Shown here: positions 23,201 to 46,500 of the stretch, in pieces
How the letters are laid out: the number at the start of each line of letters is the position of its first letter
Position numbering within the stretch: the first letter of the stretch is position 1
Assembly (NCBI GenBank): GCA_976226885.1
Contig: OZ320318.1
Location: 60,884,001 to 60,948,000, forward strand
Direction: 5' to 3'
Source of the DNA: Iphione sp. A-MEVVRFRX5
Lineage: Eukaryota
DNA length: 64,000 nt
Notes under the pieces: model-generated
What the model was told of the DNA's origin: nothing
The model's database searches: none
The model's input: only the letters and a program-made list of their open reading frames with translations
Position numbers and translations under genes: made by a program

Positions 23201-26200
23201 AACAGCAATGGCACCACTTCTTGAATGAGCCCCGGTTTCCTTACGTGCGTGGCCATGCGTGCGTTGGAGTGCGGGAAATGCACCAATTTTACTGTCATGG
23301 TTATTTTAATGAGAGGTGTTCCTTACGTGCGTTGCTGTGCGTGTGCGTTGCTGTGCGTCGCCATGCGTGGCTGGTTTTCGGACCGTTCCCGTAAATTTCA
23401 CGCACACGCACAGCAATGCACTGGTATTTCCATCATTTTGACTGACTTTGACTGAATTTGACTGTCTTTTGACTGATGATACCGCACATTTCCACACAAT
23501 GACGTTTTTTTCCCGAATTTTTCCGCACATTTTTGCCGTTTTTTGGCCGAATTTGCATGAAATATGCGTTTTTCGGGACAATTTTCATGAAATTTGCCGT
23601 TCTTTGGACAAATTTGCATGAAATATGCGTTTTTCGGGACAATTTGCATGGAATTTGCCGTTTTTCGGCAGTTTTTTGCTGTTTTTTCATATTCTCTAGT
23701 CATATACGCACACAAACGCACGCATCAGTTGAGGACACCCCTGTGCGTTGCCGTACGGAAACCGGCCTAGACACCCCGTCCATGCGTTTTCCGCACTGAC
23801 ACGCACACGCATACCAACGGACGGCACCGCAGGTAAGGAAACCGGGCCTGAGGCAGTATCTGTGCGTGTGTGTGTGCGCGTGTGCATGCATGTGTGTGTG
23901 ATGAGAGTTTGTGTCAGAGGGAGGGTAGTAATCAAGGCCACCAACTAAAACAGGTGGCCAGCACAAAAACAACATTCCTCCCTTAGTCACGAACCTGCCC
24001 AAATTCACGACTGGCTTAGACTTCAAACAGCTTGGCACGTGAGCGGCACACGTTTTACATAGTGGAGGTCTCCCACCACCAACTGAAACATTATGAGTTG
24101 ATCTGACCTCCAGTGATTAATAGGTGGGATAAGCCGCATTACTTTTCCACTAAACTAGTCCTGTAAAATACATGTATATTGGACCTTTTCCTACTGGAAT
24201 CTGGAAGCAAATCAAGTGAAAAATGTTCAGCCTTCCTGCTAATCTAGCGGCTGGGGTACTCCTCAGGTAATCAAGGTATGTCTGATATCGGTCCTTTTTC
24301 ATAGGCCATTATCCGCGCATTTCCCTTAGTATAAGGAAATGAGCATCGAGGTTAGTGTCCACTTTGGAAACTACTACATTTGCTTTGATTCAAGATCATG
24401 ATATGGTCCGATACCTTCAAGGAGTCGCCTAAGGTCAGTTTATTGACGATTTCCCTCCCATTTACCCATATCGCTTTGGGCTGCTTGTTTTTACCTGCTG
24501 GAACAATGATTTCAAGCTCTTAGCAAAGTAATGATTATGAAGCTTTATTTTTTTTATACATCGCCTTCTAACAGGTCTAAAAGCTGGGCAAAGGTGGTGG
24601 AGAGGTCTCTGGATATGCTGCCCCCACTGCTACCAGCCACATCTCAAGCATCGACAGCTTCTTCGGTCTGCATACCCTACCTGGGATAGGGTAAACCCTC
24701 TCAAGCTGTTTTCCTGTCGCAAATGAGTAAAAGGCTGAGCAAGAATGATGCCAGGGTGTCAACAGTGACAATTTAGTGTGTCAGACTAATCTCCGCAAAC
24801 CACACCAAGAGAGTCAACCCTCGAAAGGTTGTTATTATCTTAGCCTTACTCGGCATGTAACTTTTCTAAAACTACCACATAGATTAGTCAGAAAGGAAAG
24901 TCCATAAAATTCATACCTCACCTGAAATATTAATATCAGATCCTCCAAACATAGGTAATGTTAAATATCAGTAAAAACTGTCATGACATTGTTTTGGATC
25001 TCACAAGGTGGAGATACCTTGGGTAATGGGAAAACATAATAAAATGTTACTTTTAAGAGTCCGTAAATTGAGGACGAAGGGTTTAGGCCTAGGCTCTAAC
25101 TTTTTGTGCGATAATCCAAGCCCGGCACCCGAGGCCGCAGGCCGAGGGTGCAAGGGCTTGGATTATCGCACAAAAAGTATAGAGCCTAGGCTTAAACACT
25201 GTTCTGACTACGACAATTTTATAAAAGAGGGTGAAATATTACCAAATTACTGCTTATCTTGGTAGAATTTTGTTGAGATGATGAGGCTTGTACGCCATTT
25301 TGGATTTGGATGTTTACTTTTGCATCGTGACTTTCTATTGGTCGTTTACCTTTTTATGGAAATATATTAAAATAAATGTGAAATTTGACAAATACAAGTC
25401 AAGAAACATTTAATAATTCAATTATTCAACAATTTATTCACATAAGGTGTACATTTATTAAGAATTTTCCAAAACGAGTATGTGCGAGCTGCATCTAATG
25501 CGCGTTTCCGGTTTACATGTTCATTTGCGCGCGAATTGAATATTAAAGACGCAGTTAGCGAAATTTGCTCCTGAGAACATACCAGCAACATCTTGTTCGA
25601 TATTTTTGTCAACTGTTGTGGAAGATGCTGTAGTTACTGATACAATGGACTTTGATGACGGAATTGTGGCTTTCTGCTCATCCGCATTGACAATTGCGGG
25701 CACAACACTTTCGGGATTGACTAAACATGAATCTGCCTTGCTTGCTTTATCTGCAACAACGGTTGCAGTCTTTCCGAAACTAGACAGGGTTTTGGACATA
25801 GATGCCTTCACATCTGAGGAACAACTTCCCAAATATGGAGCAAGTGAGTTAACATTTTTATGACCCGTTACTTCTTGTATTTTGGTCGGGGCAAAGCCAG
25901 CTCGGTCAAGGTTGGTTACTACCGTTGAGCGAATACAATGATTTGTGTATTTTTGTGAGAGACCACCATCTATACTCATATCCGACATCATACTGTATAA
26001 CTTGTTGCGACCCACAACCATATTGTCATACCAGCATGTCTGCTCATAACGATAAGGCCGTTTTGGCCGCTGAAAAAAATATGGATTCATTTCATTCAAT
26101 TTAGCCATGTATTTTTTGAAGCAAACCAAAGGGCACCTCCTAGGGTTCTCAGGTGTTGCATACATTCGTGTACTAACATCTTTCTCGTCTCGATTTAAAC

Positions 26201-29200
26201 CTTGACGGGTCTTTTCTTTCTCATTGAATGTCATATGAACATATTCCCTGTCCCTTCCATCAGTTGCTATGTTGAAGCTGTCCTTCCTTAATTCCCTCAA
26301 CCCTTCCCTTCCCCGTCTCCCAAAGTGAACCATTACATTATAAAACACCTGTCTCTGCAGCCCTACTGGATCATCCTTGAACACCTTGGAATAGAGCTTG
26401 TCAATGTCCTCATCTTCTATCACAGACTTATGCTGAGTGTGATCATTGCCCGTTTTGCGAATTTTGGCTACATACCCTTTAAAGGCTAAATTGGCATTCT
26501 TGAAAATGGGGTCGCTCGTAATATTAAATGGTTTGGAAAATGGTGGGTCATTTAGATACCGCTGTAGACCAAAACGCAAATTTTTCACAGCACTCTTTGA
26601 ATACATTTCACCTTTCTTATTATTAACCACTGTATAATATTGTTCGAGGGTATCCGCCAACTGCTGCTGGGAGTAATCTTCAAATGCCGGGTCTTTGCCT
26701 ACTCCAATGAGCCACTCTGAAAAATCATGAAAGTGCTACTAAATAATTGTTTTACAGTGATTTAATTTCATTTCATCCCATCTCCCCCATGTCAGCTTTA
26801 TAATTTACTATGCGTTTCATACCTTTGAACTGCTTGACCGCCCAACGTGTCTGTTGTTTTGTTGCTTCTGCTGTCCTGTGTTCCTTCAATTCGTCCATTT
26901 CCTCCTTGCTTGGCACATGGAAGCGAACGTTTGGATGATTCAAGGGAGACTTCTGCTGCTCATCTATCAATGTTTCTTGAACTGCAATGAAATAATCCAC
27001 ACATACCTACACTATTTGCATTAATGTTCTATGCGCCTCCCCCACCCTACGGAAACTTACATGAAAATCATAGGTAATATGATTGAAATTAATTGGAAAC
27101 TGCATAGACATATACTCACTTTCTCCTTCTGAGAGGGAATCTTGGAATTCTGCTGCATCGAGATCCATTTCGAAGGCCTCCAAGAATTTCGATATTTGGT
27201 ATATTCCTGCGATGTACTCTTCTTTGGTTGCGGTGTTTTCGAGACGATATGCATCTAGTTCCACGTTGGGGTAACGGAATATTTCCTTAACTTTGCATAG
27301 TTTCTCTTGGAAAATCACAAAATCTCCCTCTTTAATCTTAGTTTCAGCCATTTCAGCCGTTTCATTCATTCGACGTTCTCTTGTCAAAAAGATCGTCTGC
27401 TCGACCTGTGTTTATAAAACGTAGGGTTCATTTCCGCTGTTTCGACCAATGAAATCAACTTCCCTTATAGTATTTCCTGTCACATGACTTTTCTTCTATT
27501 TGTTGACAAGAAGGCATTCTTCGACGGTGTTTGTTACATTTCTTAGGAAAATAACCACAATGTCCATTAATTATTTCAGTATAACGCTGTCAAATTTCCT
27601 AACAATAATTCAGGGTCACAAAACTTGTGAGATACATACAAAAGGCGTCAGATTTTCATGAAGCGAGTCGTCAAGGGTCCGCCATTTTATTTTACTTGAA
27701 ACCAATGGTATTGCTGCTTACAAATCGCTTCCCGGGAATGGTCCAGAATTCAAATCCAGCTGAGAACAATCGTTTCTAGGGGACAATGTACCGATTATCA
27801 CAACAGGAGTGTTAGAACGGAGGACAACTCGACACCATCAATACAATTTCGCCATGGACACACACAAACATTAATTAATCATTCCATCAAGCACCACCAC
27901 AATATCACCACATCTGCAATAACCCAGCACTCAGTAAGGAAGTTAACAGTTTCACCACTGATGCGACAGTAGATGTTTCTGCTCTTGCTTTTTGCCAGTT
28001 CGTTTCAAAGCAGGTCCCTGCTGATAAAAATAAATGGAACTGACCTGTACTTTGGAAGCCATTGTAGTATTGGTAGCTTCTTTTTAACATTAGCTAACGT
28101 ACATGTGTTGCGCATGCAGGCACGGCAGTTGAAACTCATGATGCGTTCTTTGACGTCATGGCATGCAGAGGTAACGTCTTTACAGCCCTGTTGTAAGCCT
28201 GGAGTGAAAAAAGAAATAATTAATTGTCTTCACATAAAAAAGAGATCAAAATACATTTAATCGGGGTGTCTAATGGGACTACTTCATTCCCTGGTGGAAC
28301 ATTATCCTCATACTAATGCTAAACTTCAACTTTCTTGTAAATTAAAAACGAATACTTAAAAACAATTTGTGCAGCAGCAAGCAATTTCTGACACTGGAAA
28401 AGTATAACAGTCGACACCCGCGTCGGCGACCACTTCGGGACTGTGTGAAAGCGGTCGCCCCAACAAGTGGTTGCCCCAGTTGTTCACCTCTCTTCTCCCT
28501 CTCACCAAAGTAACTTAGACAATCGTCATATGTGTTAAGAGTCCTAAAAATGCTGAATTTGACGGGTAAGAGTCAAAAGGTGCTGAATTCGACACGTTAA
28601 AGTCCCAAATGTGCTGAATTTGACAAGTAAGACTCCTTCTTACCCTTCTTACTGACAGATTACATGATACATCAAACGGTCAACATGGAAGTAAAATTTA
28701 TAGCTACATTTTTAGAAGCCCTCTTCTACTGCTTTAAAATATAACACGTGCAACATTTATAGCTACATATACATTAAGCCTTCTCATGTGCTACTATCCT
28801 TTGCAATTTACGAACGTGGACAAGCTTAAAACAATTCCTATGAAATTGAAAAGACTTTTATATTCTAGTATGAACAGTTGGTGAACAGTTTGTAAACCGT
28901 TCCTTAATGTACCAACATGCTCCTAAACGTGCAAATACATCTGTATGCGCTATGTACCGTGGCATGAACTCGTAAGTTCATTGTTGATATAAAGTTAATC
29001 AGTCATAATTCGCCTGGGTCATAAAACAACAAATGTTGTAAACATATAATGTCACTGTGTGTGATAATAATTCAGATGAATATTGACAAGAAGCAAACAA
29101 CTCCAACGAGACAAAAACGTCATTCATGGCTAGTTACATAAATACGATGTACACGTTTTTGGGGTGTGTTTACCCACCCTCAGCAGTTGAGCATGTCACG

Positions 29201-35923: not shown

Positions 35924-36575
35924 GGCCGGCTTTCCATGTATCCGGAGAATTTTACGCACAGCGTAGTTCATGCGGAAATTCGGCCGATTTCCGCACCCCT
36001 ACGCACAGGTGCTTTCCATGTGTGCGTGCGTGCGTGCATGCATGCGTGCGTGTGTGCATGCATGCCATTATCTCAGACAACAGAGAGAGGGGTATCAGTT
36101 GAAATTGTGAAGTTTTTTTTGTGAATATTGAAGCATATTTGTGGAAATTGTGCAGTTTTTCATGGAGTTTGAAGCATATCGGTGGAAATTGTGCGTTTTT
36201 TCATGGAGTTTGAAGCATATCGGTGGAAATTGTGCAGTTTTTCATGGAGTTTGAAGCATATCAGTGGAAATTGTGCAGTTTTTATCCAAATGATATGCAA
36301 ATTAGAAAATAATTCACAACATCTATCAAGTGATAGACAATGTCTATCATGCTGAAAAGGCTCATCTCTCTATTCTACTTGCCTCTGTAGGCATCCGTGC
36401 TATGGAATCCGGAGAAATTTACGGCCCAGGTTCGTTTTTCACCTCCGGACCCGGACTATGGACCCACGGACCCGGATGCATGGAAACAATCATGTAAAAC
36501 ATCATAGAATCGTTTTTTTCCGGACCTACGTATGCGTGGTCCGGAAAGTATTTCCGTGTGCATGGAAAGCCAGCC
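35924..36575. mobile_element. PIF/Harbinger-like MITE
   Basis: TIR ggccggctttccatg / catggaaagccagcc (14/15), TTA target duplication on both sides, internal 41-bp tandem repeats. Confidence 0.85.
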
Positions 36576-36784: not shown

Positions 36785-37096
36785 ACGCACAAGATATACC
36801 ATATTTAATTTTAAAGCACGGCAGCCATCTTTTTTCTTCTTTGAGCCTATATGACGAACCGTGGGTGTATTTCACATAATGCACGGGACCATGGGGTCCT
36901 GTCACGCATCCCCAAACTGTGAATACACTCGTTATGCACCTATGACGCACAGCGTGGTTGGGGATGATTGGGTTTGGCAATTCAGGTGGTAGTGGCCGAT
37001 TTTACATAGCCTCTGCCGCTTGGGGAATCGAACCCACTTCATACACATGACTCTCAGCTTGCTCAGCACCTTAACCCACTGGGCCACAGAGACCCC
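36785..37096 (-). mobile_element. tRNA-derived SINE
   Basis: The minus strand starts ggggtctctgTGGCCCAGTGGgttaagg (A box)...GGGTTCGATTCCC (B box), followed by a ~230-bp non-tRNA body; no complete cloverleaf or acceptor stem. Confidence 0.75.
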
Positions 37097-37109
37097 AGCA
37101 TAAGAGAGG

Positions 37110-38070
37110 GACAGAGACCTGTCTGTTACCTGTTGTGTGTCCCCTCTAATCTTCTGTAGCGGTGTCTGTTGGATGTTGTGTGTCCCCTGTAATGCTCTGT
37201 AGAGGTGTCTGTTACCTATTGTGTGTCCCCTGTAATGCTCTGTAGAGGTGTCTGTTACCTATTGTGTGTCCCCTGTAATGCTCTGTAGAGGTGTCTGTGA
37301 CCTGTTTTGTGGCCCCTGTAATGCTCTGTAGAGGTGTCTGTTGAATGTTTTGTGTCCCCTCTAATCTTCTGTAGTGGTGTCTGTTGGATGTTGTTTGTCC
37401 CCTGTAATGCTCTGTAGAGTTGTCTGTGACCTGTTGTGTGTTTCCTGTAATGCTCTGTAGAGGTGTCTGTTGGATGTTGTTTGTCCCCTGTAATGCTCTG
37501 TAGAGTTGTCTGTGACCTGTTGTGTGTTTCCTGTAATGCTCTGTAGAGGTGTCTGTTGGATGTTGTGCATCCCCTGTAATGCTCTGTAGAGGTGTCTGTT
37601 GGCTGTTGTGTGTTCTCTGTAATGCTTTGTAGAGGTGTCTGTGACCTGTTATGTGTCTCCTGTAATGCTCTGGAGAGATGTCTGGTACCGGTTGTGTGTC
37701 CCCTGTAATGCTCTGTAGAGGTGTCTGTTGAATGTTTTGTGTCCCCTGTAACATTCTGTAGTGGTGTCTGTTGGATGTTGTGTGTCCCCTGTAATGCTCT
37801 GTAGAGCTGTTTGTGACTTGTTGTGTGTTTCCTGTAATGCTCTGTAGTGGTGTCTGTTGGATGTTGTGTATCCCCTGTAATGCTCTGTAGAGGCATCTGT
37901 TGGATGTTGTATGTCCCCTGTAACTCTCTAAAGAGGCACATGTTACCTGCTGTGTGTCCCCTGTAATGCTCTGTAGAGGTGTCTGTTACCTGTTGTGAGT
38001 CCCCTGCAATGCTCTGTAGAGGTGTCTGTGACCTGTTGTGTGTTTCCTGTAATGCTCTGTATAGGTGTCT
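37110..38070. repeat. 43-bp minisatellite, about 22 copies
   Basis: Unit cccctgtaatgctctgtagaggtgtctgttggatgttgtgtgt (starts at 37141, 37184...). It produces the repetitive minus-strand ORFs with a 43-aa period. Confidence 0.95.
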
Positions 38071-38116
38071 GGGCATCAAGGGAAGGGGGCTTGGCGTCAG
38101 GGGAGGGGGCCTTGCT

Positions 38117-38260
38117 TTAAGTGAGATACATAAGCTCGTGTGTGGCTGTTTGCGAAATAAACCCATGGGTCATTCGCCCACTCGGCTGCGCCTCGTGGGC
38201 TACTGACCCGTGGGTTTATTTCGCATACAGCCACACACTCGTTATGTATCTATCACTTAA
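38117..38260. mobile_element. 144-bp TTAA-bounded palindromic (foldback) element
   Basis: Arms ttaagtga..gatacataa..gtgtgtggctgt.tgcgaaataaaccca.gggtca and their reverse complement. The core on the minus strand reads gcccac-gaggcgcagccga-gtgggc. Confidence 0.8.
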
Positions 38261-43500: not shown

Positions 43501-46500
43501 TATATCCTTGTATGTCCATCACTGAAGGAACACAGGACAAGATACATTAAGATATATTATAGGTGCAGACCTAATGCTATTAAAATGTCTCAACTGTTTA
43601 ACACAAAAAATGTTAAAGAATTTTGTCTCACCAAATTTATCAAAATCATCATGGCCCAATTTCCAAAGAGATACTAAACAGGTTTTTATATAGAAGTGTA
43701 TAGGTTTTATTGAAAATGAAAACATGAATAAAAATGGTGCTCTTAGTTCATATATGTCAAATATGGTGCATGCAGTCTGAAACAACAACCAATCTAGTGA
43801 TGACACCTGCTTAACATTGTAAATATGTTTTGTTTCATGTTTGTTTTTGTTTGCTCTTCATCATATACTATGTACTCTCATACCATGAAAAGGGGATCTA
43901 GAGAATAAACTCATTGTCATTATCAAAATTGGTCACCAAATGACCAGCACCTAAAGTGCACGACACCTACTGAAGCATTCCTGGCGGGACGAACCATGAC
44001 AGCACCCCAGTACCTCAGGCCTAGGCAAGATGCTTGCATCCCCAAACTGGCGGGACTATAACTTATCTGTGATGACATCATATATTATTCTGTGATATAT
44101 TTAATAACATTTTGATATTTACAATAATACACATGTATGTGGTTGCACTGTTAATTACCTTCACCTCATCAGCTCACACTTTTTATGCTCAATGTCATGG
44201 CTGTATGATGACATTGACCTATAGATTTTACTTTGCCAACTTGACTTGCAAACTTTTCAGGCCTATTTTCCATGAATTTTGCTGTTTTCCAGACATCACC
44301 TGCCACAACTACACAAAAGGTAGGGTTTCACAAATTTATTTTCTGTGGATCATATCGATTGGAACATTGGCTCATTTTGACCAAAATGGCTCATATCGAC
44401 CAGTTGCTCATTTTGACCATGGATCATATCAACGACCAATTGGAACCTGAAATACAAGGTTTAATAAAAGTCAGATCAAAGTCAATGAGGTGCCCTTTTC
44501 GCAGGGGGGGGATAGGGGCCTTTGGAGATTCCGTAAGGACATTGTGAATACTCTTCATTTTTACACCCTATACTGGGTGGCCATACTACTGCCTAGGTGG
44601 TCAGTAGCTAGGTAGTAGGGAGTACATAGTTTCAATCATAAGACCATGCACTCCCTACTGTTTAGCTACTGATTATACTTCTATCACCTCCCCACTTCCC
44701 TCCCCTGCCCTTTTTCAATTAATCAACCTCCCCTCCCACTGAATCACACCAGGAAGTCTCTCTCCCCCTCTCCTGGAGCATTATGGGAGCTCAACAAAAT
44801 AATGCAAAAAAAATCTTTTGGGTAGTTTCTGGTATAGCAGACCCCAGTGAAAACTGCCATACTGGGGACAGGAGTGTGTGTGTGTGGGGGGGGGCGTCTC
44901 CCCCCACAGTAAGTAAAGAGCTTGAAGGAATGGGGGGGAGTGGGGGTCTCCCCCCACAATAAGTCGTCCTGTATATAGGCTGTGGGGACATCTACTTGCC
45001 TAACTTTGCCAGGGTCCACTATACCAGAAGTGAGCCAATCTTTTCTCTTTTTTCAAAAAACTATTATTAGAGGATATTCCCCTGCACACATAGGCCTACC
45101 ACCACACCCTCTGAATTTCTACATGGGTCTAGAGGTTTGCTTTCACATGGAGGAAGCAGCTATAGATTTCTCAACAGTTGCTGTGAGCGGAGTGGCTACG
45201 TTGGACTAACACTAAACAAGTATGTCATTATCTAGAAGAGCAGATGCTGAACAAGATCCATGCTAGCTTATGTCCATGCTTCATTTTCTACACAAGAACT
45301 TTCCGGATGGAGCCATCAAATGAGGCAATCCAACTCTTGATGAATATATTCACCAATCACTTTTTGGCTGATAGCTCCTCCCACCCAGAAGCATCGATCC
45401 CTGACGGATGCATCCAGCATAGACAGGCTGCACGGTGCCCAGCCCTTTACAATGCTAAAATGCTTATCTTTGACTTCTTGTAACTTAGAAACTCTTTGAT
45501 GGAAAATGCCAAAGTTGGTTTGAATCATGGTTAATTCTATCTGTAATATTCACACAGAATTTTAACTCATTTAACTCAGAATTTTCTCATTGGCCTCAGT
45601 GCTAGACCGCTTTGTCTACGATTCAAATTCCCACACGTTTCCATGGGTGCTCTCTGATTGGTCAGACTCAGGTGTCACTAACAAAAAGCAATCGGTTATT
45701 ACCTATCTTCTTTGTGGCCGATCCATTCTTCTTGTCACTCAGCCCTCAAAATAGGATGGGCCTGCTGTGATCTGGAATGGGTCATTGGTTATTCCCTCGT
45801 CTTCTGCTGCCACAGATTCTGCAGAGAGGACTTGCCACAACATATACAGGGCTATGTTGACAGATGTCAGCTTACAGCTTTTAAAGCATTAACTTTCCAC
45901 AATTTTTCATTCATTTCACTGTTTCACACAGGCTTCATTAGCCACATAGATCTCATCATTCCTGATTGATCACGTACAACAGGATGTGGTGGATGGAAGT
46001 CACTCAAAATCAGCAGTCTGATTCTAGCCTGAAGAAGGGTCGAGTATAGACCCGAAAGCTCACTGACTTGTGACCTTTGAAGACAATTAAAAGCCAAGCT
46101 TTGGCATCAAACGAGTTCTGGTTTTGTTTCCAAACCAAAATCAGCAGATGTAAGATCTAGTGTGCTCCAGAGCACCATCCTTGGACTGCTATTATTCTGA
46201 TTGCACATCAACGACCTACCATGTGTCACTGACCCCAAAACATAGGTCTGCCTCTTCTCAGACGACTGCCTGAAATATAGGAACATCAGTAGCATTCAGG
46301 ACCAATTCTCTCCTCCTTTGGAGGAGAGACACAGAGCTCATACTGTCATTTAAGATGGCGCATAGTCTGGTGGCTGTCACTCCAGAAGAATGACTTAAGG
46401 ACATGTAGGACACACAAGTTCAAATTCAAAGAGAAGAGGACATGAACAGAAGAAGAAAAGTTCTCCTTTGTCCACCTTACCATCACTGAGTAGAATAAGC

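Follow-up and report, generated by a model that had tools for sequence, protein, structure and literature searches.

An imperfect foldback at positions 38117-38260 of the 64-kb window (the whole stretch of DNA analysed here, 64,000 nucleotides from a eukaryotic host genome of 1.18 Gb) is the conserved 3'-terminal module of a gene-less, satellite-carrying mobile element of ~1.4 kb that occurs in hundreds of copies. The hairpin of this element, hereafter element A, is maintained by compensatory change, such that structure and not sequence is conserved, and the two ends of the element are halves of one larger, split palindrome. The results support a parallel with the Cryptons of the same genome, which extends to the hairpin tip, the strand-specific G.A mismatches, the co-variation of the arms and the position at a sharp element end. 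We propose, with moderate confidence, that the enzyme mobilising A in trans is a tyrosine recombinase of the Crypton type, which acts on the split palindrome once folded.

Extent, parts and insertion sites of the element

The foldback recorded in the initial annotation was borne out by the analysis. It contains a 136-nt imperfect palindrome (38121-38256) with TTAA present on both sides in the window copy (38117-38120 and 38257-38260), and the DNA fold of 38117-38260 reaches -58.5 kcal/mol, compared with -15.3 +/- 2.8 kcal/mol for dinucleotide shuffles (z = -15.3; 0 of 200 as good). The foldback recurs at dispersed sites in the genome, for which there were 621 first-look candidates; the 40 scored copies are 81-90% identical. 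Exact genomic matches numbered 304 for the 3'-terminal 19-mer of A and 180 for the 19-nt hairpin tip, while the 5' 22-mer had 925 matches at up to one mismatch; the reversed control gave 0 for each of the three.

To define the boundaries of the element, 28 further copies of the foldback were aligned together with their flanks. DNA rightward of ...TATCTATCAC was different in each of them, placing a sharp 3' boundary after ...CTATCAC in 28/28 copies. Leftward of the left TTAA, the same 28 copies continued with a conserved GCCGTGCT or GCCGTGACT and then a microsatellite, which was (GA)n, (CAGA)n or G-rich. An all-versus-all comparison of 3-kb loci gave the same picture, as the 29 loci shared 0.2-1.5 kb to the left of the foldback and nothing to the right. 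A second sharp boundary was found on the 5' side, where TTAAAGCACGGC-N-GCCATCTTT, beginning at TTAAAG, was present in 14/16 copies. Beyond both boundaries the flanks were unique in every copy. Paired A ends on contig C1 span 0.75-2.7 kb, and a solo hairpin lacking the rest of the element was not found among the 29 A loci. The window copy is composed of the following parts:

36811-38256, plus strand: whole composite non-autonomous A element, 1446 bp, with two sharp boundaries
36811-36822, plus strand: 5' terminal inverted repeat TTAAAGCACGGC, inverse of the 12 nt ahead of the palindrome
36824-36832, plus strand: short internal inverted repeat GCCATCTTT, partly complementary to the 5' repeat and conserved in the aligned 5' modules
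36859-36946, plus strand: 5' module region that includes a degenerate direct copy of the right arm of the palindrome
About 36859-36886, plus strand: mini-hairpin of ~28 nt, CCGTGGCTGTAT-TTCGC-ATACAGCACGG, conserved at ~49-76 of the 5' module in most copies
36990-37095, minus strand: spacer with a tRNA-like (SINE-head-like) stretch, read by eye
37120-38071, plus strand: tandem array, 43-bp unit x 22.1 (TRF score 1232, 83% matches)
38072-38108, plus strand: G-rich microsatellite-like stretch (TRF row 38072-38114), replaced in other copies by (GA)n, (CAGA)n or further G-rich runs
38109-38120, plus strand: 3' subterminal inverted repeat GCCTTGCTTTAA, conserved in 28 copies and including the left TTAA of the initial annotation
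38121-38256, plus strand: terminal imperfect palindrome, 136 bp, fold z = -15, with co-variation
38181-38195, minus strand: hairpin tip CGAG-GC-GCA-GC-CGAG, carrying tandem G.A mismatches and a GNA triloop; of the inner alignment columns, these are the best conserved
38257-38260, plus strand: 3' flank, target DNA, TTAA in the window copy

The short repeat GCCATCTTT starts 1 nt after the 5' repeat and folds back on it in some copies, the 5' module matches the right arm of the palindrome in two collinear direct stretches (18/20 and 12/12), and the stem of the mini-hairpin is a repeat of the middle stem of the big palindrome. ARAGORN called no tRNA in the spacer at 36990-37095, partial matches to which were present in only four loci (L014, L016, L021 and L028). 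The 43-bp array family recurs in many A copies, and others hold different arrays between like ends. The stretch had been described as gene-less, and this description stands: the window element contains no real gene, and its open reading frames are periodic translations of the tandem array. A is a non-autonomous, high-copy family and a composite carrier of tandem repeats; the minimal hairpin-only element that had been envisaged gives way to a mobile unit of ~0.75-2.7 kb with a tandem-repeat array.

The flanks of the aligned copies show how A inserts. At the 3' flank, the first base is A in 11, G in 7 and T in 10 of the 28 copies and C in none; the second is T in 19/28 (T or C in 20/28), the third is A in 27/28 and the fourth is mixed. 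On the other side, the element always starts with TTAAAG and the preceding base is T in 9/14 copies. Because the left T is invariant while the first base on the right varies, no duplication of 2, 3 or 4 bp fits. A inserts without target duplication, with a T or A on its 5' side and, on its 3' side, an N-T-A resembling the bases with which it begins; TTA(A) at the start of the element can be set against N-T(19/28)-A(27/28) after its end. Of the two TTAA words in the window copy, the left one falls within the internal inverse repeat and the right one is target DNA. The Crypton of the same window (family B, described below) follows a comparable rule, with GTTC at its 5' end and G-D-Y as its 3' flank (G, then not C, then a pyrimidine in 29/29 copies). 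The first flanking base is never C in A or B, and the second is T or C in 20/28 A copies and 29/29 B copies.

These flanks bear on the proposal that TTAA bounds the element. A TTAA-specific cut-and-paste MITE of the piggyBac or Kolobok type would consist of the foldback alone and would duplicate its TTAA target, and the window copy, with TTAA beside both foldback ends, resembles one; the preference of the 3' flank for xTAx points the same way. The likeness is confined to the window copy. TTAA is the right flank in just 2/28 copies, the left TTAA lies inside conserved element sequence, and the 29 loci share DNA leftward and none rightward, with no solo hairpin among them, so the foldback is not the mobile unit. 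The TTAA duplication, which the initial annotation had itself set against its reading, was looked for and is ruled out by the flank tables of the 28 copies. We consider a MITE of this type very improbable.

Elsewhere in the window, 44601-44672 holds another imperfect palindrome of 72 bp, with 30-nt arms that are 83% complementary and a 12-nt spacer; it is not assigned to a family.

A structurally conserved hairpin, split between two ends

The palindrome has been preserved as a structure. Among the 28 A copies, 96.8% of palindrome cells are paired, and co-variation was detected at 12/40 pairs, with 68 cells changed on both sides compared with 18 +/- 3 in shuffles (0/500) and at most 6 in slid controls. 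The inner arms are too variable for alignment, yet they remain paired within each copy.

The departures from perfect symmetry are conserved as well. On the top strand CTCG stands opposite CTCG twice, so that the bottom strand carries CGAG/CGAG tandem G.A mismatches, and folding with DNA parameters gave the bottom strand the greater stability in 25/28 A copies and 27/29 B copies. Among the 180 exact tips the triloop is GCA, GAA or GGA. GNA loops and sheared G.A pairs are generic motifs of stable DNA hairpins, and a loop in which G and A are fixed and the middle base varies is as expected if a sheared G.A-closed loop, and not a sequence word, has been retained.

The second half of the structure lies at the other end of the element. 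The first 12 nt of A (TTAAAGCACGGC) repeat in inverse orientation the 12 nt that lead into the palindrome (GCCGTGCTTTAA), with 9-12 of 12 positions matching in most copies, and in L004 and L006 the sub-family changes of this repeat occur at both ends. When the two ends were joined in silico, 3' to 5', the hairpin lengthened by 12-16 bp and gained -14 to -21 kcal/mol. After joining, the breakpoint CAC|TTAA falls in the right arm, 4 nt from a 2-nt bulge that is kept in all 28 copies.

Several loci depart from this arrangement. At locus L072 (232-345 and 1140-1256) the A palindrome is without the CGAG-GNA-CGAG tip and has the centre GGATT-AGC-AATCC; near this copy, the opposite strand bears a tandem duplication of the final 31 nt of the element, in a rearranged or head-to-head arrangement. 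Two further atypical copies, C1:100826057-100826208 and C1:82284700-82284786, are known from their coordinates only. One of the two has a complete 22-nt inverse of the 5' end ahead of the palindrome. In the other, the 5' 22-mer is just ~60 nt from a tip, and this copy is possibly a minimal element.

Parallels with the Cryptons of the same genome

The hairpin of A lies 11.6 kb from a second hairpin with a matching tip, which belongs to an element with a recombinase gene:

25072-27820, minus strand: Crypton (family B) with a DUF3504/tyrosine-recombinase open reading frame and its 3' palindrome at 25072-25204

The open reading frame matches Pfam DUF3504 (2.6e-14) and Phage_integrase (5.4e-6). The palindrome represents a second, separate family with 166 candidates of 85-96% identity; it adjoins a sharp element end and has the tip CGAG-GCC-GCA-GGC-CGAG (CGAGGCCGCAGGCCGAG). 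Full-length copies of B and deletion derivatives of 655-827 bp have both ends in common. Moreover, the 5' end of B, GTTCTAAC, is the inverse of GTCAGAAC (GTYAGAAC) directly before its palindrome, which is the same split layout as in A. The short copies of B (L033-L058) retain about the first 160 bp and the last 190 bp of the element, with the palindrome in the latter part; none of them contains a tandem array.

The initial annotation had likened the cores of the two palindromes, pointing to 25128-25148, and this likeness was confirmed: the best local alignment of A and B is a 15/17 match at the exact centre of both. It had also likened the arms, each with TGCGA, an A/T tract and CCC, and here the comparison failed. 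An arm-only alignment scored no better than shuffles (p about 0.5-0.66), the letters concerned lie in variable, co-varying columns, and the arms have no sequence in common beyond the tip. A local duplication of the 25-kb palindrome was rejected, as the arms are unrelated and the two palindromes belong to separate multi-copy families found genome-wide; the view of them as sibling families held.

In the 64-kb window the tip pattern CGAG-stem-GNA-stem-CGAG occurs at just two sites, the A and B palindromes, and about 240 kb of further DNA contained it at palindromes of this kind and nowhere else. It is central in A (19-22 of 28 copies), in B (21-26 of 29) and in the recombinase lineages L060, L061 and L067. 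These three are among ten other recombinase lineages that we sampled (46-68% protein identity), eight of which have a palindrome of 113-153 bp located 350-560 bp beyond the match to the open reading frame. All eight palindromes have the CTCG/CTCG mismatches and six are preceded by CGTTGTTAGAAC; the tips of the remaining lineages are variants of the motif. Cryptons are abundant in this genome, with at least 1684 recombinase and at least 1170 DUF3504 first-look candidates and many open frames.

The ends of A are nevertheless distinct in sequence from those of the Cryptons examined. The Crypton motifs GTTCTAAC/GTTAGAAC and the subterminal CGTTGTTAGAAC are absent from A, and a hybrid with GTTAGAAC within 30 nt of the start of an A palindrome had 0 matches in the genome. 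Comparison of the A ends with B and the ten sampled lineages gave no near-identical pair of ends; the arms were unlike, and only chance words were shared with the ten lineages. An 8-mer (AAAGATGG/CCATCTTT) is common to A and the outer stem of the L062-type palindrome, from which we claim no relationship.

The search for an autonomous partner covered the A loci themselves and the surroundings of candidate genes. No recombinase (YR) gene was present in 33 A loci, nor was there a recombinase or Rep gene within the long 5'-to-3' A pairs on contigs C1 and C2 (L071-L073). The initial annotation had expected A to co-occur with DUF3504/YR genes. None of 152 scored YR/DUF3504 loci (~15% of candidates) lies within 95 kb of an exact A tip, and A is not enriched near recombinase genes, the nearest distances on C1 being as for random positions. 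No such enrichment would be expected of an element that is mobilised in trans. Helitron-like Rep genes yielded 36 candidates, all of them scored, with 32 matches and ~20 open frames of 1930-2168 aa; because all candidates were scored, the proximity test is close to complete for this class. The 18 Rep loci located on five contigs all stand at least 148 kb away from any exact A tip. C1 and C2 together hold six Rep loci; five of these, including four intact ones, have no A-type end of either kind closer than 1 Mb, and the only A feature near the sixth is an unpaired 5' end at a distance of 47 kb. Scans of metagenomes for both A ends gave nothing besides one chance match, and the Cg_HINE supplementary tables, of which the table itself was illegible, had no words in common with A.

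Nothing shows that the A family is active at present, given that its nearest copies are ~95% alike. Since the closest copies differ by ~5%, the cognate autonomous lineage may be extinct. Taken together, what the initial annotation had observed is partly confirmed and its interpretation partly supported: of the proposed system of an autonomous YR element and a non-autonomous partner, the gene-less sibling with a Crypton-type hairpin signature stands, whereas no recombinase with A ends was found among the loci covered.

At locus L070 (3313-9652; C2 near 12.26 Mb), a minus-strand LTR retrotransposon with protease, RT, RNase H and integrase open reading frames follows an A-type 5' end and appears to sit inside an A element. 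It also has a 731-aa open reading frame with a weak match to Baculo_F (envelope-like).

Mobilisation of A and its significance

In the model that we favour, the 3' and 5' ends of A would be joined in an excised circle or a single-stranded intermediate, with the junction ...CTATCAC|TTAAAGCACGG, and this would lengthen the hairpin. A Crypton-type tyrosine recombinase would read the folded hairpin, probably on the strand that carries the G.A mismatches and the GNA loop, and strand exchange would take place at CAC|TTAA. A inserts, without duplication, just 5' of an N-T-A resembling its own first bases (TTA). For A, we infer the strand choice, the single-strand exchange and the circle.

Bacterial tyrosine recombinases offer an experimentally proven precedent, as the attC sites of integrons and the attP site of the CTX phage are folded as single-strand hairpins. 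Sites of this type have an imperfect hairpin with extra bases near the cut, a favoured strand, and a structure that is kept over sequence. A shares these traits, the strand choice by inference, but the attC and attP sites are bacterial and much shorter. The IS200/IS605 elements, which are prokaryotic and use an HUH transposase, have small hairpins with like stems at both ends, make no duplication and recognise a target word that resembles the word at the other cut site. A is like them in its hairpins at both ends and their like stems, the lack of duplication and the target word (TAN versus TAA on the minus strand); it differs from these prokaryotic elements in the size of its hairpin, and no such transposase was linked to A.

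Among animal Cryptons and their derivatives (CryptonA/I; CryptonI-1N1_RPro and CryptonA-1N1_OL), there are likewise high-copy gene-less families beside abundant recombinase elements (PMC3212892). The known non-autonomous Cryptons are plain deletion derivatives, ~98% identical to their parent at both ends (PMC3212892), whereas A has no known parent, is without the motif GTTAGAAC and carries a tandem array. With the Cryptons of its own genome, A has in common the hairpin tip, the strand-specific mismatches, the split palindrome and the logic of the 3' flank. Fungal Cryptons have short direct repeats, to which the imperfect recurrence of the first bases of A after its 3' end may be comparable.

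We counted in favour of the Crypton-type recombinase the sharp boundaries, the split palindrome, the co-variation, the strand asymmetry, the common tip, the flank logic, the abundance of recombinases, and the distance of at least 148 kb between the 18 Rep loci and any exact A tip. Counted against it were the failure to find a recombinase element with A-type ends in the loci covered, the missing motifs GTTCTAAC/GTTAGAAC, the different arms and cut-site sequences of A and B, and the array, microsatellite and short inverted repeat, which are hallmarks of HINE and pearl elements and are absent from B derivatives. The pearl/HINE-like tandem-repeat elements of this genome might be moved by Crypton tyrosine recombinases acting on a folded, single-stranded split palindrome, in the manner of an integron attC site, with the G.A mismatches and the GNA loop marking the active strand; we offer this wider suggestion tentatively.

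Those hallmarks point to another mode of transposition, in which A is a HINE (a pearl/DTC84/DINE-1-like, non-autonomous Helentron) and depends on a rolling-circle Rep/helicase for its movement. Its palindrome of 136 bp would then be an overgrown 3' stem-loop and the likeness to Cryptons a convergence on stable single-stranded DNA hairpins; the G.A/GNA features could have been selected independently by an HUH Rep. Like A, HINE, DINE-1-like, pearl and DTC84 elements are gene-less and consist of a left module, a tandem core, a microsatellite and a right module (PMC4067079, PMC7492417, PMC3879986), and the order of parts in A is that of DTC84/pearl (PMC3879986) and Cg_HINE (PMC7492417). HINEs have inverted repeats of 11-13 bp at the 5' end and subterminally at the 3' end, as A has repeats of 12 bp at its 5' end and directly ahead of its 3' palindrome (TTAAAGCACGGC versus GCCGTGCTTTAA). 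They also have a short inverted repeat adjoining the 5' repeat, with the HINE 'IR' (PMC7492417) in the same position as GCCATCTTT, show different arrays between like ends and make no target duplication, all of which holds for A; the T that ends the 5' flank in 9/14 copies, the TT that begins the element, and the intact Rep/helicase frames of 1930-2168 aa in the genome fit as well. HINEs are ascribed to Helentrons because those of mite, mosquito and fly share ends with autonomous Helentrons (PMC4067079); for A, the surroundings of the Rep loci on the five contigs revealed no Helentron with A ends. The palindromes described for HINEs are of 5-10 bp in a right module of ~60 bp (PMC4067079, PMC7492417), forming short stems 8-35 bp from the end, whereas that of A is 136 bp long and extends to the last base. 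The 3' flank of A is N-T-A and not the T of HINEs (T at the first position in 10/28), the tip signature CGAG-GNA-CGAG is shared with recombinase elements of this genome, and most of the Rep loci on C1 and C2 (5/6) have no A end within 1 Mb. On this evidence we regard transposition as a HINE as rather unlikely.

Alternatively, A could be an orphan whose enzyme is of another kind or has died out, with the symmetry of its palindrome kept passively, for instance through hairpin-primed repair or a switch of template from one arm to the other, and not by selection for a recombinase site. The searches described above yielded no partner, whatever its class; the closest copies are only ~95% alike, so that the family may be dead; and template switching is known to make the two arms of an inverted repeat more alike (PMC13100816). 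A passive process would, however, erase asymmetries, yet 28 diverged copies have preserved the bulge, the CTCG/CTCG mismatches and the tip, and these asymmetries recur in recombinase elements, which makes an orphan family of this sort improbable. A hairpin RNA gene, such as a microRNA-like precursor, is scarcely credible: the one match in its favour, to the Rfam family MIR1858, scores 44.6 bits against a gathering score of 137, is to a plant family and reflects the long hairpin alone, and the hundreds of dispersed copies have transposon-like boundaries.

Mobilisation by a Crypton-type recombinase, the reading that we prefer, would bear on how animal Cryptons work. According to the literature, animal Cryptons lack terminal repeats (PMC3212892). 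All that A, a gene-less family of a thousand copies, has preserved is a hairpin, a split palindrome and a few asymmetries; recombinase elements share these features, which points to the parts of the ends that are important. The ends of A provide substrates of oligonucleotide size for binding and cleavage assays. If a Crypton does move A, these ends would be the first defined cis site for animal Cryptons.

The comparison also concerns classification. Inverted repeats together with a 3' palindrome have been used to assign tandem-repeat elements of the mollusc type to Helentrons; the same layout is present in recombinase elements, and classification by architecture alone is thus unsafe. If the wider suggestion made above is true, some invertebrate elements filed as Helentrons by their architecture would belong to another class of transposon. 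Tandem-repeat-carrying elements of this kind are known sources of satellite DNA, and their movement by Cryptons would add a recombinase-driven route for seeding satellite arrays.

Just upstream of A in the window, 36022-36283 holds a (GTGC)n microsatellite followed by a tandem repeat of 41 bp x 4.6, which is possibly the remnant of another repeat-carrying element.
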